A DNA stretch of 64,000 nucleotides from Eutreptiella sp. 'Long Island Sound 2002' (Eukaryota > Protista > Euglenida). The notes under the pieces were generated by a model. That model worked only from the letters and a program-made list of their open reading frames with translations. It had not been told where the DNA came from and ran no database searches. The position numbers were made by a program, and so were the translations under genes. The stretch covers positions 166,036,001 to 166,100,000 of the forward strand of contig OZ038378.1 in assembly GCA_964036045.1 (NCBI GenBank), given 5' to 3'. Below, one piece after another: positions 2,394-34,527 of this stretch; within the stretch, counting starts at the first letter, position 1; every line of letters begins with the position of its first letter.

Positions 2394-2548
2394 CCTGGAG
2401 TGGACCAGTGGTCAGCGGCATAGACTCGTCTGCCTATAGCGGAGGTTCGAATCCTCCTATCGTCGTAAACACACCACCACCCCCTACAACAGCACACGCG
2501 GCCAGCGGGTCCACGGGCACCGGCAGCGGGCGGTGCGCCTCGCTTTTT
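2394..2548 (+). ncRNA. tRNA-like Pol III unit R1 (copy 1): A box, perfect T-arm, T5 terminator
   Basis: TGGACCAGTGG A box; GGAGG-TTCGAAT-CCTCC T-arm at 2441-2457; TTTTT at 2544-2548. No acceptor stem, so it is SINE-like rather than a tRNA. Confidence 0.55.
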
Positions 2549-2589
2549 CAGGCAACCCCCCCAAACCCCCGGCCCCCTACGCGCGCCGC

Positions 2590-2790
2590 AAAAAACGCAC
2601 CACCGCCCCCTCCGGCAGCGCGCGCCGCTTGCGCGTCTTGAAGCCCGGCAGCGTGGCGAGGGGGGCGCATTCGCTGCAGCCGGGCACCTGCAGCGAGTCT
2701 TCTCTTCGGCAGTGCAGCCACGCGCACAGCGGGAATTGAACCGGCGCCTTCACGGCACGAGCCCGGCGATTCAACCGCTGGGGTAGCACT
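2590..2790 (-). ncRNA. tRNA-like Pol III unit R2 (copy 1), minus strand, T6 terminator
   Basis: Minus strand reads GTGCTACCCAGCGGTTGAATC...GGTTCAATTCC (B box). The A6 run at 2590-2595 is T6 on the minus strand. Confidence 0.5.
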
Positions 2791-2930
2791 CACCAAAGCC
2801 ACAAAAAGCACCATGCACGCATACCAACACAGCGACACCCCACGATGTGCGCCACAAAGCGACAGCGAAAAGCGTCGGATTCACTAACCATGACGGGCCC
2901 CTTGGAGTCTGTGTGTGTGTGTGTGTGTGA

Positions 2931-3242
2931 GCGGGTGGTTACACCCGTCTCCCGCTAAGTACCTCCAGAGTAGACATGTAAGTAGCGCTGCGGTTTTCAA
3001 CAGATCATACAATCATTGGCTAGACAGGGCCAGACAGTGGGCAGGGTCTGTGGTGATCAGCGCACAATGCACTGTGAGAACAAACTCCTCTTCACCGTCA
3101 CCCCTGTCGCAGAAAGGACCTTGCCTACCTTTTTGTTAATGGCCTGATGAAATTGTCTCGGTGACCAGTGCTCTGCCTTCGCTTGCTTTCGTCTTCACTG
3201 ACGTTGTGCCCCGCGTTTGGTCCCCACTGGTTTTCCCGCACA

Positions 3243-3245
<3 letters not shown>
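2931..3245 (+). repeat. Non-coding module A (copy 1) between (GT)n tracts
   Basis: Starts with a GGGTG-GTTA-CACCC hairpin and ends AAG|(TG)n. Homologous to 6930-7244. Confidence 0.8.

Positions 3246-3281
<36 letters not shown>
3245..3281. repeat. (GT)n microsatellite
   Basis: Pure GT dinucleotide run. Confidence 0.95.
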
Positions 3282-3282
<1 letters not shown>

Positions 3283-3722
3283 CTGGGTGGTTACACCCAT
3301 GGCCAGCGAAGGTGAGGGCCGTGTGACCAGCTGTGCGTGCATGCGTGTTCTGCTGTCTTGCGACCGGACCCTTGGTGCAGCGACTTACCCCTCCGTGATG
3401 ATGGCGATGTCAGTGAGACGTCACACCAAGGTGCTCGCCATTGGAGAGGGATGACTCGGGCAAACCCGAGTGGGAGTGAGTCCCGAGCACCGGTCATCTG
3501 CAATGCTGTTGTCTGTTCCTGCTACTCTCTTGTGTATGTGTGAACGTGTGTCTGTGAATCCGACTTACAGCACCACTGCTGTCAGTCGACTGCTCGTCTG
3601 AGGGCCAGCATTTTTTGCTCCTCTGATGAGGATGCTGGAGACTTGTACCCACAGTGCCTCCCGGTGCATTTGTATCCACATTGGTTATCTGTTGGTTCTT
3701 TTTCCCTTCACTATCACTCAGT
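3281..3722 (+). repeat. Non-coding module B (copy 1)
   Basis: Near-identical to 5022-5462 and starts with the same GGGTGGTTACACCC hairpin as module A. Confidence 0.85.
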
Positions 3723-4519
3723 CTGTGGTCTGCTGTTGGCACACCCCCGTGACCGTTCGGCAGTGAAATGTTTGGTGCTCAATGCTCCGTTTTTTTCATC
3801 TTTCAGTTTCCTCTTTCTGCACCCTGTTGTATGCCGCACATCTTCGGTACCTTTTTCTCTCCCCCCCAATATACGGTTATGCACTGGAGTACTCCCCAGG
3901 CGAAAATGAGGTTTGCTGGCACCAACTGCTATCTGCCGCTCTGGACACCACCTGTACTGTACTGAGGCTATATCCCGGGTGTGTTTGACACGGCTACGTG
4001 TCGGCCGGGTGGGACCCCCCAGGGAGTGCCGGGGGAGTGAAAGTATGGATTGCTGCCACCAACTGCTACCTGCCGTCAGTGTTTAATTTGTACCTTCATG
4101 GCTTCCTACTCTTCCTCTGAGCCCGGATTTGTAGACCCCTCCACAGTTCCCCTAGTGCCGGAACGTTTGGGCAGACACTGGTTTTATGTGCTACGGCGTG
4201 CGTTCAGTGCTGTTATGCACACTGCTCTGACTGCAGTCCATGCGTACACTACACCATGCGGTGCACTAGGCCGTGTAAGGGGGCATGGGGCTTTGTGCAC
4301 TCGCCCGCGGCTTTACAGGTGGGGGGCTCGAGTCGCCCATCCAGGTGCATCGTAGGGAGTACTGTACTCAGCGAGCTCATGTCCTGTTTTTCCTTTTTTC
4401 AACCCTATAGAGCCTTACTTACTGTAGCCACCGAGGACGTGTTTTCAGGCTCAACACGGAGGTGGCAGTGTGCTTGAGTGTGTGTGTGTGGGTGAATGCA
4501 CGCAATGCAGGGTAAGAGG

Positions 4520-4670
4520 CGTGGAGTGGTCCAGTGGTCAGAAACATAGACTCGTGAGCCTATAGCGGAGGTTCGATCCCTCCTGTCGTCTTAAACGCAC
4601 CACCGCCCCCTACAACAGCACACGCGGCAACCGGGTCTACCGGCAGCGGGAGGTGCGCCTCGCTATTTTT
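4520..4670 (+). ncRNA. tRNA-like Pol III unit R1 (copy 2)
   Basis: TGGTCCAGTGG A box; GGAGG-TTCGATC-CCTCC T-arm; TTTTT at 4666-4670. Confidence 0.55.
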
Positions 4671-4700
4671 CATTCGCCCCCAACCCCCGACGCAAGCCAC

Positions 4701-4898
4701 AAAAAACGCACCACCGCCCCCTCCGGCAGCGCGCGCGGCTTACGGGTCTTGAAGCCCGGCAGCGTGGGGAGGGGGGCGCATTCACTGCAGCCGGGCACCT
4801 GCAGTCTTCTCTTCGGCAGTGCAGCCATGCGCACAGCGGGAATCGAACCGGCGCCTTCACGGCACGAGCCCGGTGATTCAACCGCTGGGGTAGCACAC
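4701..4898 (-). ncRNA. tRNA-like Pol III unit R2 (copy 2)
   Basis: GGTTCGATTCC B box on the minus strand (4838-4850 region); A6 at 4701-4706. Confidence 0.55.
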
Positions 4899-4967
4899 AC
4901 CACAGCCACATACACAAGCGTGCACGCATACCGACACAGGCACGATATAGGACACTCCAGCAAAACG

Positions 4968-4969
<2 letters not shown>

Positions 4970-5022
<53 letters not shown>
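4970..5022. repeat. (GT)n microsatellite
   Basis: Pure GT run. Confidence 0.95.
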
Positions 5023-5023
<1 letters not shown>

Positions 5024-5462
5024 CTGGGTGGTTACACCCATGGCCAGCGAAGGTGAGGGCCGTGTGACCAGCTGTGCGTGCATGCGTGTTCTGCTGTCTT
5101 GCGACCGGACCCTTGGTGCAGCGACTTACCCCTCCGTGATGATGGCGATGTCAGTGAGACGTCACACCAAGGTGCTCGCCATTGGAGAGGGATGACTCGG
5201 GCAAACCCGAGTGGGAGTGAGTCCCGAGCACCGGTCATCTGCAATGCTGTTGTCTGTTCCTGCTACTCTCTTGTGTATGTGTGAACGTGTGTCTGTGAAT
5301 CCGACTTACAGCACCACTGCTGTCAGTCGACTGCTCGTCTGAGGGCCAGCATTTTTTGCTCCTCTGATGAGGATGCCGGAGACTTGTACCCACAGTGCCT
5401 CCCGGTGCATTTGTATCCACATTGGTTATCTGTTGGTTCTTGTTCCCTTCACTATCACTAAG
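5022..5462 (+). repeat. Non-coding module B (copy 2)
   Basis: Near-identical to 3281-3722; ends AAG|(TG)n. Confidence 0.85.
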
Positions 5463-5653
5463 TGTGTGTGTGTGTGTATGTGTGTGTGTGTGTGTGTGCG
5501 TGTATGTGTGTGTATGTGTGTATGTTTGTGCGTGTGTGTGTGTGTATGTGTGTGTGTGTGCGTGTGTGTGTATGTGTGTGTGTGTGTGTGCTCGCGCGCG
5601 CGCGCGTGTGTTTGTGTGTGTGTGTGTGTATGTGTGTGTGTGTGTGTGTGTGT
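5462..5653. repeat. Imperfect (GT)n microsatellite
   Basis: GT run with AT/GC interruptions. Confidence 0.95.
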
Positions 5654-6436
5654 CCCGACACCCCATCCCACCCCATCGTTTCCATAGTGTGTAGCCTGCT
5701 GGGCGAGGCGTGGGGCCTGGATGTGCTCTGTGAGTGTATGTCAGGCCCAGGGGACACCTGCAAACATCGCTGCCACTCAGCGTCCACAACAGCCCTCGGT
5801 TTTGACATGATTCGCGGGGAAACGGGTAAGGGACTGGCGTATCTGCACCCCAGCGCGCTCTCATCAACCTGGAGTTTGAAAAGTGCACCCCCCCTCCTAT
5901 CTCCTGCAAGCACCTATCCTGCCTACCTCCCGGGTATCATGACGGGCGCCCTGAGCAATGCACGCCCTTGGGCCACGACATGGGCAGGGGAGCTGCTGTC
6001 CCTCTCCGCTTGGTTACAAATAGCCCTTCTCAGCGGGTATGCATTGCCACAGGTCACCAGAGCGGCACACTCAGCAGTCACTAGGGGCCTGTCTACAAGC
6101 CCCAACGACCACACGGCAACTGTCCGCTACCTCTACATGGTTCGCCAACTCCTCCCCATGCCACACTGTTGCCACCTCACGCTGTGCGCCGCGTGGCTGC
6201 GACGACATGCACACTGGGCGGGGGACAGCTACAGTAGTTGGCAATTGGATCCATCCCTGTCACCAGACGGCACCACAGGTTTCTGGTGCGGGGACTGGGA
6301 CATCCTCCAGCTCCACGCCGCCAAAGTTAGACACGGAAACCATGACTGCCCCCCTTGGGAGTCTGTGTGTGTGTAGTTCGATAACGTCCGTACATGTGCA
6401 TGTTTGTGCCACTGACACGCAGTGTGGGGTAAGAGG

Positions 6437-6587
6437 CCTGGAGTGGTCCAGAGGTCAGAGACATAGACTCGTGAGCCTATAGCGGAGGTTCGATCCCTCC
6501 TGTCGTCATAAACGCACCACCGCCCCCTACAACAGCACACGCGGCACCGGGTCTACCGGCAGCGGGAGGTGCGCCTCGCTACTTTTT
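6437..6587 (+). ncRNA. tRNA-like Pol III unit R1 (copy 3)
   Basis: TGGTCCAGAGG A-box variant; GGAGG-TTCGATC-CCTCC T-arm; TTTTT at 6583-6587. Confidence 0.5.
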
Positions 6588-6617
6588 CATGCAACCCCAA
6601 CCCCCGACACAAGCCAC

Positions 6618-6810
6618 AAAAAACGCACCACCGCCCCCTCCGGCAGCGCGCGCGGCTTACGGGTCTTGAAGCCCGGCAGCGTGGGGGGCGCATTCACTGC
6701 AGCCGGGCACCTGCAGTCTTCTCTTCGGCAGTGGGGCCACGCGCACAGCAGGAATCGAACCGGCGCCTTCACAGCACAAGCCCGGTGATTCAACCGCTGG
6801 GGTAGCACAC
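6618..6810 (-). ncRNA. tRNA-like Pol III unit R2 (copy 3)
   Basis: GGTTCGATTCC on the minus strand; A6 at 6618-6623. Confidence 0.5.
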
Positions 6811-6929
6811 ACCACAGCCACATACACAAGCGTGCACGCATACCGACACAGGTGGGATATAGGACACCTCAGCAAATGTTAGACCCGGTAACCATGACTG
6901 CCCCCCCTTGGGAGTCTGTGTGTGTGTGG

Positions 6930-7241
6930 GCGGGTGGTTACACCCGTCTCCAGAGAAGCCCCCAGAGTAGACATGTAAGTAGCGCTGCGTTCCTCAACAT
7001 CTCTTACACTCATTGGCTAGACAGGGCCAGACAGTGAGCAGGGTCATCAGTGATCAGTACTGCATTGCACTGTGATAACACGACTCCTCTTCGCCGTCAC
7101 TCCTGTCGCAGAAAGGACCTTGCCTACCTTTTTGTTAATGGCCCGATGAAATTGTTTCGGTGACCAGTGCTCTGCCTTCGCTTGCTTTCGTCTTCACTGA
7201 CGTTGTGCCCCGCGTTCGGTCCCCCCTGGTTTTCCCGCACG

Positions 7242-7244
<3 letters not shown>
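6930..7244 (+). repeat. Non-coding module A (copy 2)
   Basis: Homologous to 2931-3245; ends AAG|(TG)n. Confidence 0.8.
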
Positions 7245-7550
<306 letters not shown>

Positions 7551-8210
7551 TGCATGCGCGCATGCACCTGATTACAGCAGTATTTCAACCTTTGCGCTCC
7601 TGTCCGTTGCATGCGGGAGACTTTGGGCCTTCAGCGCTTCATCTTTTCTTTCCTGTACTGTACGTTCTGTGTGCACGTTTGCCTCGGATTCAAATGATAT
7701 TTGCTAAGTTTGGCTGGGTATCTCCCTCGTCATTTCGTTGTGGGGAGAAGGAGCGGATGTACACAAGGTGGGGGTCCTGTTTTCCCCTTTCCGGATCCTG
7801 ATGAGCGCTGGCCACAGACGCGCACACAATGCGAAATCACCGAACACCAACACCCAGCAGGCAACAGGGCACGGCAATGCAACTTGTAAGGCTACAGAAC
7901 ATGGAGCGTAAAAACAGACCCTGGGCTAGAAGCCTTTCTGAGTGGCACGGAGAGCGGCAGCACAGTCCGCTCTTCTTCCTCGGAAGGACTCCCCCCCGTC
8001 CCCCAATGCGCACAAGCGAAGGAGCCGAAAAAGATTTCGCGAATTTCGACACAACTGCCGGTTGCAGTCCACCAGTGTTGGCGGTTTTGCCGCCAGCGCA
8101 CCCTGCGTTGATCCTGCTGTTTGGCGCATCGAGCCGTGCGCGTGCGCTACCCACATCGGTCCCGGCTCTGCGGTGCGCATAGCTCGTCCATGCGCTCGTC
8201 ACCCGTTCAG

Positions 8211-8510
8211 GTGTTCCCTGTGTTCGTCAATACGCTGCCGTTAAGGCAGGATTGGCAGGAGAACCCCATCGTGTACCGCACGCTGTGCCATCTGATGATG
8301 CACGTGCCCGACAAGCTCATGCCGCACATGGCCACTGTGCTGAAGCTCTGCGCATATGCGCTGAAGGCCCCCGAGAACGAAGTGTCGGCCGAAGTGAAGG
8401 CTGGGATCGCCCCGGTGTTGAAGCAGTTGCTGCAAGGGAACGAGGCGGTGCAGCAACACGCGTCCCAGATGTCCGCAGAGGACCAGGCGGTGTTGCGGCA
8501 GCTGCTGTAG
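8211..8510 (+). CDS. IPO4: Terminal exon of an importin-4-like karyopherin beta
   Basis: Follows the acceptor ccgttcag|. VFPVFVNTLPLRQDWQENPIVY...EDQAVLRQLL* resembles the IPO4/Kap123 C-terminus (LPLKEDxEE, terminal HEAT helices). Upstream exons are outside the window. Confidence 0.7.
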   Translation: MFPVFVNTLPLRQDWQENPIVYRTLCHLMMHVPDKLMPHMATVLKLCAYALKAPENEVSAEVKAGIAPVLKQLLQGNEAVQQHASQMSAEDQAVLRQLL

Positions 8511-21600: not shown

Positions 21601-22170
21601 CACCTCAAAGAGAGGCTTTTAGACCAAACGCAGGTGCGGACCCGTACACCCCCCCTTTTTGGGGGTCGTTCACGTAGCATACCCGAAGGCATGATATTGG
21701 ATGTCTAACCCCTTGTAAAATCATTATTTTGCCTGACAAAACGATCCCCCAATGGATTTTTAGATTTTGAGGCCTCAATCCCCCTGAAACTGAATGTCAC
21801 ATTTTAGGGGGTGGGGGTCAAAAGTTTGTGCTTAAAAGGATTTGAACCAGGGTCGGGTGAAAAAGAGTAACCGGTCCATAGACCCACGCCGACGATCGCT
21901 GGCTGGGACTCAAACCGACGACGTTTGGGACACGAGGTGAATGTTCTACCACTGGATGGCCGATTGATGCGCTGCAACTGGGGTTCCCCATTGTTTGTAG
22001 ATGTAGTCCGTGACTGAAAAAAGCCAAACTGTGTGTTTCTGCCAGCCTGTCTGCCTGCCTGCTTGCCCAACCGACTGCCTGCCTGACTGCTTGCTTGACT
22101 GACTGACTAACTGATTGGCTGACTGTCAGCCTCTCTTCGGGGTCATGAAACCACGTAGGCAATAGAATTT
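21601..22170 (+). repeat. Dispersed repeat family, copy 1 (includes GCCT/GACT tetranucleotide tract)
   Basis: Aligns with 43678-44288, e.g. GTAGCATACCC(G/C)AAGGCATGATATT...CCCCTTGTAAAATCATTATTTTGCC. Confidence 0.8.
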
Positions 22171-24422: not shown

Positions 24423-24589
24423 GGTGTTTTTGTTGCCCCTGCATGTGGTGACACTGCCACTGAGACTCTGAGACCCAGAATCTTACCGAAAGCAACAACT
24501 CTTGACCTACACAGGGCCCAGTGCCCTCGCTTCGCGCTCACACAGGCTTCTGGCCTCGCTGACACTGCCCTTGAGCGGGGCCATACAAT

Positions 24590-26620
24590 ATGTCGCCCAT
24601 CACGCTGGACGACAAAGCGCTACGAGGGCTGCGCGACATCATCCGCCAGGAGGTTCAGGCGGCCATGGGAGCGACCTCACAACAGCAGCCAAGTCCAGCG
24701 GCTGGAGAGCGAAACACACCCACATCTGCAAAGAGCACCAGCAAAGGTGCAAGCAGATCACAAAACCCCACCCAATCCCAGGGGGCAGCAGGATCCAAGG
24801 CCAAGGCCAGATCACAGTCCCCAGCCCGCCAGTCAACCACTGGTGCAGGGAGCAAAAAGGTGCGAGAAGATCCCAAAGACAAGGAAATACGAGAGCTCAA
24901 AGACATGATCAAAGAGCTCACCGCCACGATCAAGGAGCTTCGGGCCTCCATTCGACATCCCAAGAAGACGTCAGACAACGAAGATGCAGCGGAGCCAACA
25001 CAGCTGGCTCAACGGCCACGCACGTATGCGGACGCAGCGGCCAAGGAGAAATCCTCCTCAGTGCAAAAGTCACAGGAAAGCAGCCAGTCCAGTGCTTATA
25101 CGGTAGTCAAATCACGATCTGCTGTCAAAGTACTTGGCAAGCCAAAAGATGTAGGTATGCCAGTGCAACCAACGCATGGAGTAGCTGCGGAGGAAGCACG
25201 AACCTGGCAAGCCTCTGCTCTACTGCCATTGCAACTCTGGAAAGAAGCCGAGAACAAGCAACTTGGCCTTCCGGTGCTGAATCCCAGCAAACCACCAGCC
25301 GAATGGAAAGTCTCAGAGAGACCAGGCACCTTCCAAAGGGTGCTCATGCTAGGAGGCACAGCAGACTCATGTGCGGAACTCGCAGACATGGCTTTCACGT
25401 CCCATCCTCAGGTAGAACACATGGCCGCCATCGTCAACGTGCCAAATACAGCCGGAGTCAAAAAGGCAACTGTCGCGGACGCACTACGCCGCATGAGGCT
25501 CACGCGCGCCGATCTGGATGTTCAGGGCTGCTTGCTAACCCTGGCAACCCGAATCACGCGGGCCGAGTGGGTCCACTCCGAGGGTCCGCCCAGGCCCATA
25601 GCAGATCAGCAACTATGGATGCAGTGGGAAAGGACCACAATGGAGCAAGACGACGAATCGGACCATCAGGAATCAGACACGGCGGAGCATGCCCCAGTGA
25701 CCCCCTCGGAGAGGGAAAGTGGCTTCCACAAGATATCCTTGCAGATAGATCCTCTTATGTGCTCGGATTCCGAACTGCCTCCGAACAGAACCAAAGGCTC
25801 TGCACAACGATGGGTGAGGCAACAAACAATGGAGTACCTGAAAACGTGCATGCAAGAAATGACACAGGCACCGCCAATGGAGATTTTTCGCCGAGCAGAA
25901 CATTACTCAGTCACGATGGAGCTCCCACTGGAGGCTGCCAAAAGGGTGCTCATTGGGTCGGGCAAGCTGCAAGGCATCGAGGCAAGGCCGTGGATGTCGA
26001 AAGGATCTCCTGGACCTGGACTGGAAGCACGCATTCTCTGGCTGAAAGCCCCCAACATGAAGAGCTCCAGCAACATATGGGAGATCCTTCACACCCAATA
26101 CTGGTTTGCTGGTGTGCTGACAGGAGACACTGTCGGCAGATGGGGTATCCGAATATGGGGAACAGAAGAACCAAGCGAGCAGCAAAGGACAGGTATTGCG
26201 AACCTGCTTGGAGCAGAGGCCCCCACCAAAAGAACACGCATACGGGTGTACGGATACCCGGCCGGTTTCGGCTACGGTACCACGTGGGCTCAAGAGGAGG
26301 CCGCGCGTGTCTTTCCCTCAGGCAAGGTCCAAGTTCTTTCCTGCCAACACCTCGTCAGCACGTCCATAACCAAGCCGGTGTTCGACATTACCGCAACGGG
26401 GGTGCCAACGGAATGGCAGGCGCACAAGCTGGAGTCCACCGACACCAGAGCAAACCCACGGATTTGGAGGCGGTGCGTGTCGCACAAACTCCGACCAGCA
26501 GCGGAAAGAGTTGGACGCCAAGAGAGGCTACGTCTAGCCACACGGGCAGACGACGACCCAGAGACTACCTCTTTGCAAGACGTCGTGGAGGACAACCACG
26601 ACATGGAGACAGGACAATAA
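24590..26620 (+). CDS. ORF1 protein of the non-LTR element (676 aa, coiled coil)
   Basis: Heptad coiled coil KDKEIRELKDMIKELTATIKELRAS, TYADAAA motif, and a globular C-terminal half. Its TAA overlaps the ORF2 ATG. Confidence 0.8.
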   Translation: MSPITLDDKALRGLRDIIRQEVQAAMGATSQQQPSPAAGERNTPTSAKSTSKGASRSQNPTQSQGAAGSKAKARSQSPARQSTTGAGSKKVREDPKDKEIRELKDMIKELTATIKELRASIRHPKKTSDNEDAAEPTQLAQRPRTYADAAAKEKSSSVQKSQESSQSSAYTVVKSRSAVKVLGKPKDVGMPVQPTHGVAAEEARTWQASALLPLQLWKEAENKQLGLPVLNPSKPPAEWKVSERPGTFQRVLMLGGTADSCAELADMAFTSHPQVEHMAAIVNVPNTAGVKKATVADALRRMRLTRADLDVQGCLLTLATRITRAEWVHSEGPPRPIADQQLWMQWERTTMEQDDESDHQESDTAEHAPVTPSERESGFHKISLQIDPLMCSDSELPPNRTKGSAQRWVRQQTMEYLKTCMQEMTQAPPMEIFRRAEHYSVTMELPLEAAKRVLIGSGKLQGIEARPWMSKGSPGPGLEARILWLKAPNMKSSSNIWEILHTQYWFAGVLTGDTVGRWGIRIWGTEEPSEQQRTGIANLLGAEAPTKRTRIRVYGYPAGFGYGTTWAQEEAARVFPSGKVQVLSCQHLVSTSITKPVFDITATGVPTEWQAHKLESTDTRANPRIWRRCVSHKLRPAAERVGRQERLRLATRADDDPETTSLQDVVEDNHDMETGQ

Positions 26621-29600
26621 TGCTGTCCGTTCGGGCAGTGGCATTGCTGCGTCCAAGGGCATGCACGAGTCGGTACAAACAGCCGCCGTGCTACGCGAGA
26701 CGGACACGTCCGCCGCGCGGGAAATCTTCAGGATTCCTCTTGTGCATGCTGTGCCTTCTGCCAAGGTGCTCTAACCGTAGACAATGTTGCCATACACCAG
26801 CCTTGAGTGCACGCAAGTGCCCCCCCACTGAGCTGACGAGAGAGGACGCAATGAGAACCGCTCGGGCACGCAGCCCTGAAATGATGCTCCCCCTACCAGG
26901 GCTCTTACCACCCAGGACGTGCGACTGCCACCTGGACTGCCTATTCCTGATGACAGGTACTATGTTTTATTCCATGGGACGGTCGCACAAAAGGCGAAGG
27001 TCGGACTCCAGCAGCGAGGAAGGTGAACGCCAACATCGAAAGCGGCAGCAGCCGCAACAGCACACCCACATCCATGTCCACGTCCACCAGCCCCAACAGC
27101 GGCACCCAGATCGGTCGAAACGCCGCAGTGCACACCGAGAACGATGCAGGATCCAAGGCGAGACCAGACGGATGGAAAGCGCGCTGCAAGAGCTCAATGC
27201 CCAACAGGCAACTGAAGTCCAAGCAGCCCGGGAGGAGCAGCAGTCGGCCGCGCAGTACTCTGACAGGGCTCCTCTGATCCCGTTCCAGGCCAACCTGCCG
27301 AGACAAAGGCCACGGACACCCAGCTACGAGCAGGTGATGGCCCGCCCACCGCTACCCAGCTACGATGAGGTAGTGGGGATGTCAGCAGACGAGGAAGAAG
27401 CAGAGCATGGCCCCAGCAGATCCGGACTCGCCAACCCGTACTCCCTGGAGCAGCTGAGGGACATCTCGGCAGCGGTGCAGATGCAACCGGAACGGCCCAC
27501 GGTGATCACCGACGTCCTGTACAAAACAGGCTCATACATAGCCTTGGCGCTGGAGCCCCATCTTGCGCTGCATCATCGCGATGATTGGGTCAGAGACTGG
27601 GCCACGGATGTCGGACGCCAGCTGGGCTTTGACGACGCGCCAGAGCCCGACACGGTCAAGCAAGGGACCCATGCGGCGCCACGAAACTGGAGGCTGCGGC
27701 TGCGGGGAAGGAAACCCCAGGGACTTACTTTCGGCATCAGCTCCAACGCCAAATATGGAGTGTCCCAGTACGCATGGGCCTCGGGCGCGGAATGGCTGAT
27801 CAGCCGCATCGAAGCCCAAACAACAGCAGCGAGGCCGCCGTCACCGCCACCGGAGGACGAAGATGCCCAGCCGCCGGCATACGCGCCACGCCAAGAGTTT
27901 GTGGACCAGGTACGTGCAGACCTTGCTTGGCAGATGCCTGAACGTGCGGTCCTCTCAGCAAGCGCTGATACATGCAGATACAATACCCCCCTGCTCACAC
28001 AAACTTGTCTTCTCACTTCCAGTGGCTCGACCCGGAATGGAAGCTGCAGCGAGGATACCGAGACGTCAGATGACCGTGACCTGAAAATCCGTCAAGGCGC
28101 ACCATCACCGCTGCACATGCGCACTCTCAACCCTGCCAGTGACGAGCGGGCCAGCATAGCTAAGACGGAGAGCTCTGCTAACCACCCAGCTAAGCCGTGC
28201 GCGAGATGGGAACGCCCGCCGCGTCACAGTGCCGAGAGACAGTCTGTGATGGCGAGAGCCGCCAGACTATTATGGACGAGTCGGGTAAGCCCGCCGTCCT
28301 CAGCAGCGGTGCCTGATGCACACCGCAATGCCAGTATTCACTGTCACTGTTACCTCAGAGCTTCTCTTCCTGACCCCTCCAGCATGCCTAACCGCCTGGC
28401 CTGCCCTGTTCCTTTTCGCCCCCTGCTCCTGCTCCTGGATCAGTCAGATCAGAATCTCACCCCGACGCAGCCGGCCCACAACTTGGCACAGCTGGTGCCA
28501 CCTGACCAGTGGGCCGCGCTGCATGTGCGCGCACACACACGCGCACACACGCATCCACACTGGAGGCGTGACCAGATCCTACGCTGTGGTGACGTGCACC
28601 CCAACCCAGGACCCACCTCTCTGGCACTCATCAACGTGACGGCCTTGCGAGCACACCACCATGAAGTGCTGGATTTGCACGAGGACATCGTAGCACTCAC
28701 GGAAACACGGCTCACGCAAGGGGCCCAGAATGCAATGGCCTTCATGGCGAGACAGAAGGGGTGGCAACCCTTTTGGGGAGCCCCCCTACTATCCAAGACA
28801 GGTGGCATTTGGGGAGCTGCCCCAGGAGGGGCGGCCCTTCTGGTACGGGAAAAGTGGCCGGCAAAGCAAGCTCAGCGGGACCCGGGATGCACACTAAGTG
28901 AGGAACTGTGGAATTCAGGCAGGTGGCTGCACGTCATCGTGACCCCAGCGGATGGTAAACGCCCCCTAAACGTGATTGTGGTGTATGGGATCCCAGGAGA
29001 CCACAAGCTAAATGGCAAGCTATGGGAGGCAGTGCTGACCCAAGTTGCAAAGCTGGGGAACTCCCCCTTTCTGATAGCCACGGATGCCAATGTCCAACTA
29101 GATCACTATCGCTGCATGCCCAACCTCATGATGACGGAGCTGCTTTCGGGGCGCATTGTGGATGTCGACCTCTTACATGCACGGACCACGGGACAGGACT
29201 GCCAGTGCTCGTACCACAATGGCTCCATCAAACAGAAACCAACCAGAATTGATGGTATTTTGGCAGATGCCAAGACGGCCAGTGCCATCATGAAAGTCTT
29301 GCCAACCGAAAGATGTCCCGTGCCTGGACACAAGCCGGTCACCTTCACCTTCAATTTCAAGCAGTCTGCCCAGCGGGTTCTGAAGTTTGTGCGGTTACCA
29401 CCCATGATACCAGCCCACCTGCAGAAACGCAAGCGGGACCAAATTGTGAAAGACGTCACCGAACCATACGTGGCGATATGGGAGAAAGTCCTAGACAATG
29501 AGGCGTCCACGGCAGATCAACTGTGGGACCTCTGGACGTGGCTGGCTGAAGAAACCATGCTGGTCCTGACCATGGCACCGCCGCCAGCGGTCAGGACAGG

Positions 29601-32600
29601 AATATGCCAACTACCACTGGCTCCCCAAGAGTTGCCGAGAGGACGGGGAACCAAGAAGATGCTCAAGACGGTGGAGCTCACGCCGAAGCGCATGACGTCG
29701 TCAGGACTCCCGTGCACTGCACCAACTAAGGAGATGTCCGCCCTGCTGAGCGCCCTAGTGCCAGTGATGAAGTGGGCGGCAAGCAGGGAACAAGCCGTGG
29801 TCCCTGTTATGGGCCCCGTACCACGAGAGGTCCTCAACAATTGGAAGGCGATACGCAGGAGAGCCCACCGCATTCTACAGCTCATCTCCAAAGGGCAATG
29901 TGTAGCAGAGCACCAAGAACTACTGCGCACGGTGATGGAGGCTCCAGAAAGTGCACCCATGAACATCACTGACTTGGTCCGGCTCAGTGATAAGATTAAA
30001 ATGCTGAGTAGGCGGCAACTGGCTCAAGAAGAGAAGAAGAGGCACCAAGATTGGAGAGAATGGATTGAGGAGACCTGGACCACATCACCTGGGAAGGTGT
30101 ACCAGTGGATCAAAGAGGACAAGTACACGCCCACGGTCCTGATCCAGAAAGAGGACGGCACCTTGACTGGCAATGTGCCCGAAATGGACCTCGTGATACA
30201 CCAGAAATGGGACCCGATAATGAGGCAGCACGCGGATCCGACGCTGCCGGAGCCGGAAACTGAACCCTTCTGGCGCAAGTTCGGCAAATATGTGGAGCAT
30301 CACCAGATGGAATGTCAGCCCATCACCGCGGAGCGCCTCTGCCGGCAATTCAAGGACATGAAACGCGGCCGGGCCACAGGTCTAGACGGAGGGACTGTTG
30401 TAGACATGCGAAACATGCCATGGCCGCTACTGCACATGCTGGCTCAGCTGTTAAACTGGGTTGAATCCCATGGCGTATGGCCTGAGCAACTTGCCACAGG
30501 GTACATTCCGCTGATCCCCAAAGGCGAGGGCAGTGAGCCACTACAGCTCAGGCCGCTGTCGGTGCTGTCTGCGATTTATGGCGCCTGGTCCGGTATCCGA
30601 CTCCGTGACTGCCTCATCTGGCAGGAGAAGTGGGTGCACCGAAATGCATTTGCCTTCAGGCCGCAGAAGAGCGCCCTGGACGCCGCAACTCTGCTGGCCG
30701 CCCTCATTGAGCGAGCACACCTACTGAAGCAGGCATTATCTGGCGCTGGCACTGACTATGTGAAGTGCTTTGATTTGATACCACAACAAATCTCCTTCCG
30801 GATGGCACGAGAATTCGGCCTGGACCCCAAACCGCAGGCGGCATTGGAGGCCATGTATCAACAACTACACAGGGCGTTCAAAATAAACGGGGCGCTGGGC
30901 TCCTTTTTTCACGCCACGAACGGCGTACTGCAAGGGTGCGCCATGAGCGTACTCATGATCAACATGCTCACCACAGTCTGGATGCGTGCCGTGGGAGAAC
31001 TGGAAGGAGCTATCTCAGTGACGGTACACAGCCTGCCGCCCATACCGCCCAAGCTGGAAGAGCCCAAGGAGCTGAGATACAGACGTAAACCCTCCCCGTC
31101 CACCGCGGTGTCCCGCCCTCGGCCACCACCGGCCCCGAGCAGGTGCGTTATGAAGACCTTCGGCTCGGGGATTGACCAATTTGAATATTGGGAACACTCC
31201 AACCCCTGCACGTGTGGCCATGGACCTCCACCTCCGCCTCAGCAATCGCAGCCGCCACACTCCTCCTCCGAACCTGCGCCCGAACGCGGTGGGCCGGTGG
31301 AAGAAGAAATGGCAGCATCGGGGGAGTCCCCGCCCCACAGCCCAGTGAAGCTCAGGGGTGCTCAACCCCAGCCACAAGAGGCGGGCACGATCCAGGTCGG
31401 GTCCATGGGCTACGCAGATGACACGTATCCGCTGCGATCTGAGGGCCAATACATGGCGCCGGTGATGCAGCTCACTGATGAGTGGCTGGCTCTCACCCTG
31501 CAAAAAGTGAACCCCAAGAAGTCACTGTCCATACAAGTACGACAATCCAAGGAAATTGCCCGCAAACACACGGTACTCCAAGGGATCTCACTCCCCCTCC
31601 AAGCTGAATTTCGCTCGCTGGGGGTGGGCATTCGTACCAGCCTGACCAGGGGGACTGGCCCGCTCCTGAAAAAGAGGACATCCAAGGGGATACACCTGCT
31701 GTCCAGAGTGAGGGGTGCACAAGGGGGCTTCAGCCGGCGAACGCACATCATTGCCACCCTGGTACAAGCCGCAGCCCTATGGGGGACCCCGGGGGCGGAG
31801 GTATCCCGGAGGGATTTGCAGAGTCTGGAGACGGCAGTGCTCCACAGTTTGTGGGGCACCTCGAGGCCAGGTAGGGCAAAGGAGATCATCTTCGTGCTGC
31901 TAGTACAGGGACACCGGGTGTCTCCTCACATGAAAACCACGTATGACAGGGTATGTTGGCTCCTCGCGGTGGCGCGCACGCCAGGCACCCTTCAGGTAGT
32001 GGTGCAGTCGTGCATTGAAGCTCGGCAAGCACAGGTACGACCCACTACATCAGGACCGGTTCAGCGAGCCCTCCTGGAGTTGGAGAGCCTTGGCTGGAGG
32101 CAGGCGGATCATTGGCGGGTCTGGAATGTGCCCGGGGTGCCCGAAGAAATAGACATGACACTCATAAATGAGGACAAATTCAAGCATATCCTGCGGGACT
32201 CCATCAGGCGGCGGGCCCTGCTCTCGCTGGAAGATCGTCGGCCGCGACAATTTCAAGGCATCTTAGGGGCCCTCGACAGGGAGGCATGTCAAGTCCTTCT
32301 GTCAGAGGGCACAGAATTTGATAAGGCGCTGCTGCGGGGCTGGCTCACAGGGGCGTTATGGACGGCTGCCAGGGCGCATGCGAGGGGCCTCAGGGCGACA
32401 CCGCTATGCCCATACTGCACGCGGCAACAAGAAGAAGACGACGAACACATCTTGTGGGCCTGCCCAGCTTGGGGCATACATCGATCCGGTGCCTGGCGCT
32501 CGCTTATGAGAACGGCGAGGGCACTGGGGCTATCAGACCAGATCAGTAGTTGGCCCACGTGCTTACGGATCTGTGGCCTGATGCCGGAACACCTGTCGCA

Positions 32601-34527
32601 CGGCATCCCCAAAGGTCAGGTGCACGACTTCATGTACGGTTTTCATAGTATGGTGCTGCAAATTCTGCGGGCGCGGGCACACCGGGAAGATGTGCAGCTC
32701 TTTGACCAGCCTAAGGCGAAACAAGGCAGAGGGTACCCATTCTGGCAGTTCATCGGGCCGCTACCGCGGCCGGAGCACAGGGAGAAGCTGCGGATTCGCC
32801 AACCCACAGCTCAAGAGTGGCGGTGGGACTCAGACTTTCGTGACGATCTGCTACGATGGGTCAACGAGTTGGTCTGGATACCAGGGAAAGGGCAAGTCTC
32901 CTTCATGGAGCTGGCAATGGACTTTGAGTGCTTCGCGGCGCGCACCCTGCCGGCCTCACCCCAGGCTGTGTATCGGGCGACTGCCCTCCCGCTACCAGAA
33001 AGGGCAAGGGTCCTAAAGCTTGCCCTAGCGACCTTGCAAAAGTTGAGCGTGGCTGGGGCCGTGCTACCAGGTGGTGTGCTTACCAAATGCTCCTCCCTAG
33101 TCCCACTGGGGGCCCCCACAGTAGTGGGTGTGTCTGCGAGACCATACTTCACACGGCGCCCGGACATGCTGAAACTCCTACAAAACCTGCAAGAGTACTG
33201 TGAGCTGCGCTGGACGGCTGTGCTACAGGCACCACCCCCCTCACCGGACACGAGACGGAGAAATGCCCAGCGGGCCAAGGAACGGCGGGAAGCAACGGAG
33301 TCCAGCCCCAGCATCAGGGAGCGCATTCCCAAGCTCAAGTACACATCGTCTCTGCTGCCTGCTATGCACACCCCCAGGCATCTCACCGGCAGAGGAGGGG
33401 GTAAGAAGAGCACCACTTTGTTTGCGGCTGACTACTTTCCAGCACACCGCAACCCTGGAGCTCCCCCTACGCGGCCCTACCGGTTGCTCCGACCTGCCAA
33501 GCAGGCGGTCCCGCCTCCACCTGATGTAGCTGCAGTGGGCCCGAGTCACCAAGCGGCACTGCCGGCGGGGCGAGCGGCAGCGCCCAGCGATTTGTCTCAG
33601 CGCGTAGATGCGCTAACTCCCCCGGATGCACCTCTAGGATGGGCTCCGCCGTCGCCGTCGCCCCCGGTGCAGATGGAATACACCTCGGAGGAAGGGCCCT
33701 CTACCCCTGAGGTCTTCTCCTCGTCGTCCTCGTGGGAATCTGAGCCCATCAACACCGGGGGAAGCTACCGGCGAGCGACGGCGGGGCCCAGAAGCGGCCC
33801 AGCGCGGTCCTCACCGCCACACGCAGTGCCCCGCACACGCGCTCCCAGGGCCCGATCCGTTCACCGGTCAGGGAACCCGGCGCCGAGGAAGTCACGGCGT
33901 AGGGCACCACCTGCGCGGGTGCCCCGAGGGGTCAAAAGGCGGCAGTCGGTCACAGCACAGCCGGGGAGCCCACGGCGCAAGCGACCCCAGCTACAGCAAG
34001 GGGATGCGCGGTCACACACGGCCCTGGAGGCCCCGGACCGTCACGGGAGCCCAGCCGGAGCCCCCCTCCCCATGTCCAGGCATGCGCTCTCATACCTACA
34101 GCTCACGGGAGCTATCACTCCTGAGCGTGCGTCACGCATAGTGGTGGTAAGCACCCCAGAGGGGCAGCGCACCCCACTACCGACACGCAGCTCGGAGCAG
34201 CCTCCACACGAAAAGGGACGCGACATCCCCCCGGGGATAGCAAGGATGTTGCAGCAGATCCGGATGCCCCCGGCAAGGCCACAACCGCTACAGCCCCGAA
34301 GGGAACCACGGCCCAACGAGCGGACTTCACGCACCGCCGCCCTGCCCCCCGGTCCTCCGATGGGGTTCAACGTAACCAGCACCCCGTCTCCGCGGGTGCT
34401 GAGCAGGCCAGGGCAATTCTCGCCATCTCCGGCATGGTCGCCGGCGGTGACTTCCAGTTGGCACTCCGTGCGGCATGTGACCCCGGAGCATTGGTCGCCC
34501 GCATGCACACCAGGGGGGGGGGTCTAA
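26620..34527 (+). CDS. ORF2 polyprotein: ~660-aa leader, 2A-like peptide, APE endonuclease, RT, CCHC finger, C-terminal domain
   Basis: GDVHPNPGP at 28588-28614. APE motifs LINVT, LTETRL, VYG, TDAN, RIDGIL. RT motifs DYVKCFD, GVLQGCAMS, GYADD (31411-31422). Zinc knuckle CPYC..EDDEHILWAC. The frame is also open upstream to 24502. Confidence 0.9.
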   Translation: MLSVRAVALLRPRACTSRYKQPPCYARRTRPPRGKSSGFLLCMLCLLPRCSNRRQCCHTPALSARKCPPTELTREDAMRTARARSPEMMLPLPGLLPPRTCDCHLDCLFLMTGTMFYSMGRSHKRRRSDSSSEEGERQHRKRQQPQQHTHIHVHVHQPQQRHPDRSKRRSAHRERCRIQGETRRMESALQELNAQQATEVQAAREEQQSAAQYSDRAPLIPFQANLPRQRPRTPSYEQVMARPPLPSYDEVVGMSADEEEAEHGPSRSGLANPYSLEQLRDISAAVQMQPERPTVITDVLYKTGSYIALALEPHLALHHRDDWVRDWATDVGRQLGFDDAPEPDTVKQGTHAAPRNWRLRLRGRKPQGLTFGISSNAKYGVSQYAWASGAEWLISRIEAQTTAARPPSPPPEDEDAQPPAYAPRQEFVDQVRADLAWQMPERAVLSASADTCRYNTPLLTQTCLLTSSGSTRNGSCSEDTETSDDRDLKIRQGAPSPLHMRTLNPASDERASIAKTESSANHPAKPCARWERPPRHSAERQSVMARAARLLWTSRVSPPSSAAVPDAHRNASIHCHCYLRASLPDPSSMPNRLACPVPFRPLLLLLDQSDQNLTPTQPAHNLAQLVPPDQWAALHVRAHTRAHTHPHWRRDQILRCGDVHPNPGPTSLALINVTALRAHHHEVLDLHEDIVALTETRLTQGAQNAMAFMARQKGWQPFWGAPLLSKTGGIWGAAPGGAALLVREKWPAKQAQRDPGCTLSEELWNSGRWLHVIVTPADGKRPLNVIVVYGIPGDHKLNGKLWEAVLTQVAKLGNSPFLIATDANVQLDHYRCMPNLMMTELLSGRIVDVDLLHARTTGQDCQCSYHNGSIKQKPTRIDGILADAKTASAIMKVLPTERCPVPGHKPVTFTFNFKQSAQRVLKFVRLPPMIPAHLQKRKRDQIVKDVTEPYVAIWEKVLDNEASTADQLWDLWTWLAEETMLVLTMAPPPAVRTGICQLPLAPQELPRGRGTKKMLKTVELTPKRMTSSGLPCTAPTKEMSALLSALVPVMKWAASREQAVVPVMGPVPREVLNNWKAIRRRAHRILQLISKGQCVAEHQELLRTVMEAPESAPMNITDLVRLSDKIKMLSRRQLAQEEKKRHQDWREWIEETWTTSPGKVYQWIKEDKYTPTVLIQKEDGTLTGNVPEMDLVIHQKWDPIMRQHADPTLPEPETEPFWRKFGKYVEHHQMECQPITAERLCRQFKDMKRGRATGLDGGTVVDMRNMPWPLLHMLAQLLNWVESHGVWPEQLATGYIPLIPKGEGSEPLQLRPLSVLSAIYGAWSGIRLRDCLIWQEKWVHRNAFAFRPQKSALDAATLLAALIERAHLLKQALSGAGTDYVKCFDLIPQQISFRMAREFGLDPKPQAALEAMYQQLHRAFKINGALGSFFHATNGVLQGCAMSVLMINMLTTVWMRAVGELEGAISVTVHSLPPIPPKLEEPKELRYRRKPSPSTAVSRPRPPPAPSRCVMKTFGSGIDQFEYWEHSNPCTCGHGPPPPPQQSQPPHSSSEPAPERGGPVEEEMAASGESPPHSPVKLRGAQPQPQEAGTIQVGSMGYADDTYPLRSEGQYMAPVMQLTDEWLALTLQKVNPKKSLSIQVRQSKEIARKHTVLQGISLPLQAEFRSLGVGIRTSLTRGTGPLLKKRTSKGIHLLSRVRGAQGGFSRRTHIIATLVQAAALWGTPGAEVSRRDLQSLETAVLHSLWGTSRPGRAKEIIFVLLVQGHRVSPHMKTTYDRVCWLLAVARTPGTLQVVVQSCIEARQAQVRPTTSGPVQRALLELESLGWRQADHWRVWNVPGVPEEIDMTLINEDKFKHILRDSIRRRALLSLEDRRPRQFQGILGALDREACQVLLSEGTEFDKALLRGWLTGALWTAARAHARGLRATPLCPYCTRQQEEDDEHILWACPAWGIHRSGAWRSLMRTARALGLSDQISSWPTCLRICGLMPEHLSHGIPKGQVHDFMYGFHSMVLQILRARAHREDVQLFDQPKAKQGRGYPFWQFIGPLPRPEHREKLRIRQPTAQEWRWDSDFRDDLLRWVNELVWIPGKGQVSFMELAMDFECFAARTLPASPQAVYRATALPLPERARVLKLALATLQKLSVAGAVLPGGVLTKCSSLVPLGAPTVVGVSARPYFTRRPDMLKLLQNLQEYCELRWTAVLQAPPPSPDTRRRNAQRAKERREATESSPSIRERIPKLKYTSSLLPAMHTPRHLTGRGGGKKSTTLFAADYFPAHRNPGAPPTRPYRLLRPAKQAVPPPPDVAAVGPSHQAALPAGRAAAPSDLSQRVDALTPPDAPLGWAPPSPSPPVQMEYTSEEGPSTPEVFSSSSSWESEPINTGGSYRRATAGPRSGPARSSPPHAVPRTRAPRARSVHRSGNPAPRKSRRRAPPARVPRGVKRRQSVTAQPGSPRRKRPQLQQGDARSHTALEAPDRHGSPAGAPLPMSRHALSYLQLTGAITPERASRIVVVSTPEGQRTPLPTRSSEQPPHEKGRDIPPGIARMLQQIRMPPARPQPLQPRREPRPNERTSRTAALPPGPPMGFNVTSTPSPRVLSRPGQFSPSPAWSPAVTSSWHSVRHVTPEHWSPACTPGGGV

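Follow-up and report, generated by a model that had tools for sequence, protein, structure and literature searches.

What does a pair of facing sequences resembling transfer RNA (tRNA) do at the 3' end of a retrotransposon? The question is raised by a stretch of 64,000 nucleotides (nt) from the euglenid Eutreptiella sp. 'Long Island Sound 2002' (assembly GCA_964036045.1, contig OZ038378.1, positions 166,036,001 to 166,100,000 of the forward strand), hereafter the window, in which three copies of one cassette are carried by Penelope-like elements (PLEs) and a short non-autonomous element. Telomerase has its closest relatives in the PLEs, elements whose transposition cycle is poorly understood. 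The anatomy of the cassette, its place in the element, its copy number, its pattern of conservation and its strand-specific pairing are matters of direct observation. The answer we favor, tentatively and at a little less than an even chance, is read from such sequence features: the cassette would comprise two convergent, tRNA-derived small-RNA units of RNA polymerase III (Pol III) type, maintained by selection as an ancient 3' module of PLEs.

The three cassettes lie where the original prediction had placed them, each composed of a plus-strand unit, R1 (A box, T-arm and T5 run), that faces a minus-strand unit, R2 (B box and T6 run). R1 of copy 1 occupies positions 2390-2548 and consists of the 5' strand of a closing helix, P1 (2390-2395), a box A-like motif (2401-2411), a T-arm with box B (2441-2457), a 19-nt motif or 19-mer (2467-2485), the partner of this 19-mer (2526-2535), the 3' strand of P1 (2536-2541) and the T5 run (2544-2548). 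A C-rich, hypervariable spacer assigned to neither strand (2553-2587) separates it from R2 (2590-2797, minus strand), which contains an A6 run, equivalent to T6 on its own strand (2590-2595), a minus-strand 3' hairpin in which the 19-mer at 2593-2611 is paired with 2613-2626, box B (2732-2742) and a box A-like motif (2771-2783). In copy 2, R1 (4516-4670, plus) includes P1 (4516-4521 paired with 4656-4661), box A (4527-4537), box B with the T-arm (4567-4583), the 19-mer (4593-4611) and T5 (4666-4670), and R2 (4701-4904, minus) includes T6 (4701-4706), the 3' hairpin (4706-4734), box B (4839-4849) and a box A-like motif (4878-4890). Copy 3 is built likewise, from R1 (6433-6587, plus) with box A (6444-6454), box B (6487-6497), the 19-mer (6510-6528) and T5 (6583-6587), and R2 (6618-6816, minus) with T6 (6618-6623), the 3' hairpin (6623-6651), box B (6751-6761) and a box A-like motif (6790-6802). 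Alignment of the three copies over about 420 nt, flanks included, gave a mean column identity of 86%.

The details of this arrangement also agree with what had been proposed. The T5 and A6 runs are kept in all three copies, while the C-rich spacers between them, 27-35 nt long, differ from copy to copy. The sequence CTCGTG is read in both heads and is altered in R2 of copy 3. The 19-mer occurs twice per cassette, being exact at 2593, 4593, 4704, 6510 and 6621 and decayed, with two mismatches, at the first site of copy 1 (2467), against a chance expectation of 0; CCGGCAGCG comes immediately after the second 19-mer, and 28 nt downstream of the first. The distance from the start of the box A-like motif to that of box B is about 40 nt in R1 and about 41 nt in R2, which is tRNA-like spacing, and by eye box A agrees with its consensus at 8-10 of 11 positions. 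The box B consensus GGTTCRANNCC matches the window seven times, compared with 1.2 expected, and six of these matches fall within the cassettes.

A 45-sequence alignment gives the general order of parts on the plus strand: a leader, the P1 5' strand (GAGGC), the box A-like motif, a variable stretch with a family-specific hairpin, a perfect T-arm with box B, the first 19-mer, a small CCGG hairpin, the 19-mer partner (GCGGnAGGTG), the P1 3' strand (GCCTC), the T-run, the C-rich spacer, the A-run, and finally the second 19-mer, the remainder of a segment termed H2 and the antisense tRNA-like head with boxes B and A. Reading of the alignments indicates that H1 and H2 are a direct tandem duplication, each spanning the stretch from 19-mer to GCGGnAGnTGCGC. 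R1 measures about 160-190 nt on the plus strand and R2 about 180-205 nt on the minus strand, with one to three R2 per cassette.

The cassette is widespread in the 2.28-Gb genome, where iterative searches placed it in at least six families (A, B, C, G, D1-3, E and F); first-look searches returned 399 to 1337 candidates per query, figures that are not copy numbers. The three copies in the window represent three of these families, namely A (copy 1), C (copy 2) and B (copy 3). Family D is old, its copies being 73-88% identical to one another. Family F is young and was detected by a profile search of fetched loci and then in the genome; its right half (A-run, H2 and R2) is repeated two or three times (loci L094-L099), and each extra R2 has its own A5-6 run without a facing T-run. 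Among these repeats, a 10-bp hairpin beside box B differs by a double change from T-A to C-G. Elements of family E end in poly-C and bear an extra hairpin of 27 nt after the T-arm of R1; at the family E loci (L079-L092) several units begin at an internal poly-C, and the spacer holds a poly-C run of variable length. Internal microsatellites precede the cassette in families C and E. The open reading frames (ORFs) that precede the D3 and F cassettes have ends quite unlike that of family A. Short non-autonomous carriers retain the cassette as well, as in the 2.2-kb element of family C and in a tandem locus (L073) with two cassettes about 640 nt apart. All non-autonomous carriers hold extra sequence and parts of the pseudo-long terminal repeats (pseudo-LTRs) described below, and the partial copies correspond to longer units truncated at the 5' end. 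Sister elements lacking the cassette were sought by the junction pattern of ORF end and pseudo-LTR, with an ambiguous outcome, the repeat that follows the cassette also containing the ORF end.

Conservation across these families is strongly patterned. It was expressed as the fraction of invariant columns among family majority states in four deep groups of the 45-sequence alignment. The fraction was 0.86 for the P1 5' strand, 0.73 for box A of R1, 0.71 for its box B/T-arm, 0.87 for the first 19-mer and 0.62 for box B of R2, compared with 0.09 for the leader, 0.24 for the stretch between the R1 boxes and 0.15 for the spacer. A run of at least five T (T5-T12), placed mid-unit, is present in 45 of the 45 sequences and a run of at least four A in 42. 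Pairing between U and A does not explain these runs, since the extra R2 of family F keep the A-run without a facing T-run. Furthermore, box B of R2 is kept in families E and F although its T-stem is by eye no longer complementary, as would be expected for a protein-binding box. The grammar of boxes and runs of two tail-to-tail units of Pol III type is thus conserved above background across families, and the original prediction, which made its reading depend on such conservation of the A/B boxes and T-runs, is borne out in this respect.

Searches of Rfam, hammerheads included, returned no family at gathering score, only weak antisense-tRNA-like matches to plastid untranslated regions (UTRs) on R2. 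A primer-binding site, that is, a plus strand complementary to a tRNA 3' end plus CCA, was considered and by eye does not fit the sequence. Processing of R1 by RNase P/Z was judged unlikely, given that no acceptor stem was seen by eye and that the tRNA model reached only 21.9 bits.

Helices were evaluated by targeted pair counts after families E and F had been added. P1 pairs the predicted 5' end of R1 with the bases just before the T-run; its variable pair 23-208 is GC in 26 sequences, GU in 13, AU in 5 and AC in 1, and families E and F have an extra A-U pair. The helix of the first 19-mer with its partner shows one double change, from A-U to G-C, in family F. By reading, complementarity is also kept in the T-arm across a change from GGAGG/CCTCC to CGGGG/CCCCG, and in the extra hairpin of families E and F across a change from GGGAC/GUCCC to GGGGCC/GGCCCC. 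In the minus strand, a helix of 10-14 bp forms between the complements of the second 19-mer and of the next 12 nt, directly before the U-run of R2. This 3' hairpin is strand-specific, with -14 to -21 kcal/mol on the minus strand (z of -1.3 to -4.6 in families A-E) versus -3 to -8 kcal/mol on the plus strand. Its minus-strand cells comprise 248 Watson-Crick, 128 G.U and 19 A.C, all three family-level changes preserve minus-strand pairing, and family F retains the hairpin with a different sequence. In an RNAalifold consensus of 18 sequences the covariation term amounted to only -0.24 kcal/mol.

Complementarity of the two tails was at the center of the original prediction, in which R1 and R2 would form a guide or primer-template duplex, or the 3' end of R2 would prime cDNA on the sense transcript. 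The predicted pairing stood in families A-E, where the last 40 nt of R2 with R1 gave -52 to -70 kcal/mol versus -35 to -45 kcal/mol for shuffles, and from group to group the two 19-mers change in concert (AAACG.. in B and C, ATACA.. in D1). It did not stand in family F, where the energies (-32 to -36 kcal/mol) are at the shuffled level of about -35 kcal/mol, so that tail complementarity is not kept wherever the cassette is conserved. Moreover, the 19-mers lie within the direct H1/H2 duplication, and an antisense R2 is therefore automatically complementary to R1; each 19-mer is also part of an intramolecular helix. Because the duplex is lost in family F while the architecture and the intramolecular helices persist, selection seems to act on the structure of each unit itself and not on the duplex. 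As for priming by R2, the occurrence of 5'-truncated copies with complete 3' ends fits priming at a target microsatellite instead. A functional duplex, whether as guide, primer-template pair or primer, is hence very improbable, and the tail complementarity is better described as a by-product of duplication.

The cassette had been assigned to a Penelope-like element, which is correct for copies 1 and 3; copy 2 resides in a non-autonomous element of 2.2 kb that is not a coding copy, and that elsewhere forms tandem arrays (loci L058-L060). All carriers in the window are on the plus strand. The first is a family-A PLE, the 3' part of whose ORF2 (CxC linker and reverse transcriptase, RT) is evident from translation at 1-2353, the stop codon sitting in a short (TG)n run. 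The last 50 nt or so of ORF2 are repeated after the cassette and followed by a (TG)n junction (2873-2925) and by a stretch of 319 nt (2926-3244), termed T, which begins with the hairpin GGGTGGTTACACCC. The same 319 nt recur upstream of ORF1, at window coordinates -3099 to -2781, with 99% identity; being present at both element ends, this stretch is regarded as a pseudo-LTR. The order of the unit is pseudo-LTR, ORF1, ORF2, leader, cassette and (TG)n, and from its location between the ORF2 stop and the junction microsatellite with pseudo-LTR the cassette is the 3'-terminal module of the element. In thirty genomic copies of family A, with 95-99% identity, the sequence continues without exception from the ORF across the cassette as far as about 3250-3289; many copies of this family are 5'-truncated at varying points, and (TG)n is found at both flanks. 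The carrier of copy 2 (family C, 3282-5468) consists of pseudo-LTR M (3282-3727), a body (3728-4470), (TG)6, the cassette, (GT)26 and pseudo-LTR M again (5023-5468). Copy 3 follows the end of ORF2 of a 5'-truncated family-B PLE (5654-6376), which starts inside a (GT)n run, and precedes its pseudo-LTR T (6925-7243) and (GT)154. On either side of the cassette, families A and B have a direct repeat of the end of ORF2, about 50-60 bp long and finishing in (TG)n, an arrangement suggestive of an old insertion into the microsatellite at the element's own terminus.

Judged by sequence, the carrier fits a PLE of the Naiad/Chlamys type that targets (TG)n, has two ORFs and possesses pseudo-LTRs; the pseudo-LTRs, the microsatellite target bias and the 5' truncation of this type are all present in it. 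The translation of ORF2 contains the CxC motif PPCKCL, and a sub-threshold match to GIY-YIG (E=0.011) lies N-terminal to the RT, with a separate ORF1 farther upstream. Comparison of the RT with Pfam and PDB gave no match. The nearest language-model clusters, which provide a lead only, bear HTH_animal/RVT_1 and are commonest in rotifers and green plants.

A number of side observations concern the insertion site. The (TG)n microsatellite at 2900-7560 has been struck repeatedly, by a full PLE copy, the 2.2-kb non-autonomous element and a 5'-truncated PLE copy, with GT runs of 18 to 154 units between the insertions. Every pseudo-LTR, T and M as well as those of families D2 and F, opens directly after the (TG)n junction with a short palindromic hairpin of the GGGTGGTTACACCC type (window 2926-2960, 3282-3300, 5023-5040 and 6925-6950; locus L093 near 6900); it may mark the unit start or correspond to the 'tail' extension described for PLEs. 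The hammerhead core CTGATGA was seen in pseudo-LTRs T (3140-3150) and M (3620-3630), with no Rfam hammerhead at gathering score or up to E=10. Just past the transposon cluster, an apparently intron-free host open frame ends at 8200-8510. An open frame of 3341 codons at 24502-34527, with RVT_1 and zf-RVT matches, represents a distinct, very large retroelement with no cassette nearby.

According to the reading we favor, TFIIIC and Pol III would recognize R1 and R2 and two small RNAs would be made, ending at the facing T-runs. The predicted R1 RNA would comprise the box A/B-like motifs and the P1 closing stem up to the T5-T12 run, with the 19-mer:partner helix inside, and the predicted R2 RNA its own box A/B-like motifs and a G.U-rich 3' hairpin immediately before its T5-T6 run. 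As both RNAs would stop at the facing T-runs, the C-rich spacer would be left free to vary. It is from the features described above that we infer Pol III transcription and any function of the cassette, and several results weigh against them. Functional tRNA genes were rejected, ARAGORN reporting 0 in the window and in 15 loci; the Rfam tRNA model gave no match up to E=10 in the window, and its best score, 21.9 bits in a related copy outside it, compares with a gathering threshold of 29. Folding of the whole units is ordinary (z of about 0 for R1 on the plus strand and about -0.5 for R2 on the minus strand), the covariation is a matter of few events among related copies, and the G/U-rich minus strand favors wobble pairing. 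In addition, production of the retrotransposition template requires RNA polymerase II (Pol II) to traverse the cassette, because all copies reach the pseudo-LTR end. Finally, no copies from other species appeared in two scans of metagenome contigs, one with the stretch between the R2 boxes and the other with the R1 T-arm plus 19-mer, among which euglenid DNA is possibly absent.

A different account dispenses with separate RNAs and treats the cassette as a structured 3'-UTR domain that acts only in cis, on the plus-strand template, in recognition by the telomerase-related RT or in assembly of the ribonucleoprotein (RNP). It would resemble the 3' tails shared by pairs of long and short interspersed elements (LINEs and SINEs), its Pol III look being inherited from a tRNA or SINE ancestry. 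The module indeed always occupies the 3' end of the unit, immediately ahead of the terminal microsatellite, and is kept by minimal non-autonomous elements without ORFs. The plus-strand P1 and 19-mer:partner helices show G.U or compensatory changes, and conserved positions are not confined to the boxes but include, for instance, those of the 19-mer and of the R2 inter-box stretch. We nevertheless consider a role solely in cis unlikely, albeit worthy of serious attention, as it leaves unexplained the runs of at least five T and at least five A around a freely varying spacer, the A-runs of the extra R2 of family F, which have no U partner, and the box B of R2 that is retained without its stem; moreover, the 3' hairpin of R2 functions only as minus strand, and plus-strand folding is no stabler than that of shuffles.

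Two other explanations were considered, each of which we find improbable. tRNA genes and B-box sites are boundaries in yeast and mammals, and the cassette could be a DNA-level boundary or insulator bound by TFIIIC/TFIIIB against silencing or read-in transcription, the RNA products being irrelevant. Box A/B motifs at tRNA spacing, conserved on both strands, would suit such a role, and the presence of convergent tRNA-like pairs in Helitron-type elements, which are unrelated, suggests that transposons of this genome make general use of such boxes; however, the conserved T-runs, the closing helix and the 3' hairpin would be left unexplained, and a strong roadblock would hamper the Pol II read-through needed for the template. 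It is also conceivable that a SINE-like or tRNA-derived sequence inserted once into the terminal microsatellite of a master element and has been hitch-hiking neutrally since. The ORF2-end direct repeat of about 50-60 bp that ends in (TG)n around the A and B cassettes is like a target duplication, and the internal microsatellites before the cassette in families C and E point the same way. A passenger would hardly be expected, however, to be retained in short non-autonomous units and, despite ORF ends that no longer resemble one another, in at least six families, to show compensatory and wobble changes within helices, or to keep its boxes and runs while the R1 inter-box stretch and the spacer are free. 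We thus prefer to regard the cassette, tentatively, as two convergent Pol III-type units under selection.

A bolder proposal, for which we see a slim chance, is that a lineage of autonomous retrotransposons related to telomerase encodes Pol III small RNAs of its own, on which its RT or RNP would rely as cofactor, chaperone or strand-specific regulator. Such reliance, if real, would explain retention of the module by every lineage and by each non-autonomous parasite. The outline of R1, a closing stem followed by 3' oligo-U, recalls that of ciliate telomerase RNA, by analogy. If the preferred reading is true, a conserved Pol III-type small-RNA pair located at the junction of units would represent a new accessory RNA module in Naiad/Chlamys PLEs, in a host group, the euglenids, not yet described for PLEs. 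The reading predicts two RNAs of defined size, ends and strand; should they exist, the host would provide a system whose retrotransposon furnishes non-coding RNAs for itself, and should they be absent, the module would still mark a cis element common to these RTs and their parasites.

With respect to known systems, the carrier resembles the Naiad/Chlamys PLEs, which have an N-terminal GIY-YIG, a CxC linker, a C-terminal RT, pseudo-LTRs, tandem insertions, a (CA)n and (C)n target bias, no canonical hammerhead, and non-autonomous relatives sharing their 3' end (Craig et al., 2021; PMC8557442). The elements described here appear to share these features, GIY-YIG as a weak, sub-threshold match; the differences are that this carrier lineage also has ORF1 and that its host is a euglenid. 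In the same study Pol III is unmentioned, and tRNA appears only in connection with selenocysteine recoding (Craig et al., 2021; PMC8557442). Literature searches on PLEs with tRNA-like modules and on Euglena transposons yielded no account of such a module.

The cassette also resembles tRNA-derived SINEs, taken together with their partner retroelements, in its tRNA-related head and box A/B-like motifs, in the existence of short non-autonomous units, in its dependence on the RT of an autonomous element and in the 3' microsatellite end that it has in common with that element. In contrast to SINEs, the module here is an internal part of the autonomous element, a PLE takes the place of the LINE as partner, and the second to fourth units are on the opposite strand. 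A tRNA-derived SINE is moreover expected to have a terminator-free stretch from head to 3' end, while here a T5-T12 run that should stop Pol III is found mid-unit in all 45 sequences. The Helitron-type convergent tRNA-relic pairs of the same genome likewise consist of two facing decayed tRNA-like sequences on an abundant transposon, but they are near-palindromic, about 35 nt apart and devoid of the design of T-run, spacer and A-run. A common origin with these pairs was considered and dismissed, two elements compared by BLAST at word size 7 showing no similarity. A further tRNA-like sequence on the minus strand of the window (21830-21980), with a CTCGTG loop and two box-B-like motifs, ends in AAACTTTTGACCCCC as does the Helitron-type element of locus L061 and is unrelated to the cassette by profile search.

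Trypanosomatid snRNA and 7SL genes use the A and B boxes of a companion tRNA gene, which is divergently oriented and lies a constant 100 bp or so away. Like the present units, they belong to Euglenozoa and reuse tRNA-type boxes as promoter modules for small RNAs other than tRNA. The units described here are instead convergent, each box pair is followed by a T-run of its own, and R2 lies at a variable distance from the pseudo-LTR, depending on the microsatellite. Hammerhead ribozymes reside in the pseudo-LTRs of canonical PLEs, and an RNA module of this kind was reported to be lacking in Naiad/Chlamys elements. Although the present module matches no Rfam hammerhead, lies upstream of the junction and is tRNA-derived, the two have in common a small structured RNA module near the PLE unit junction.

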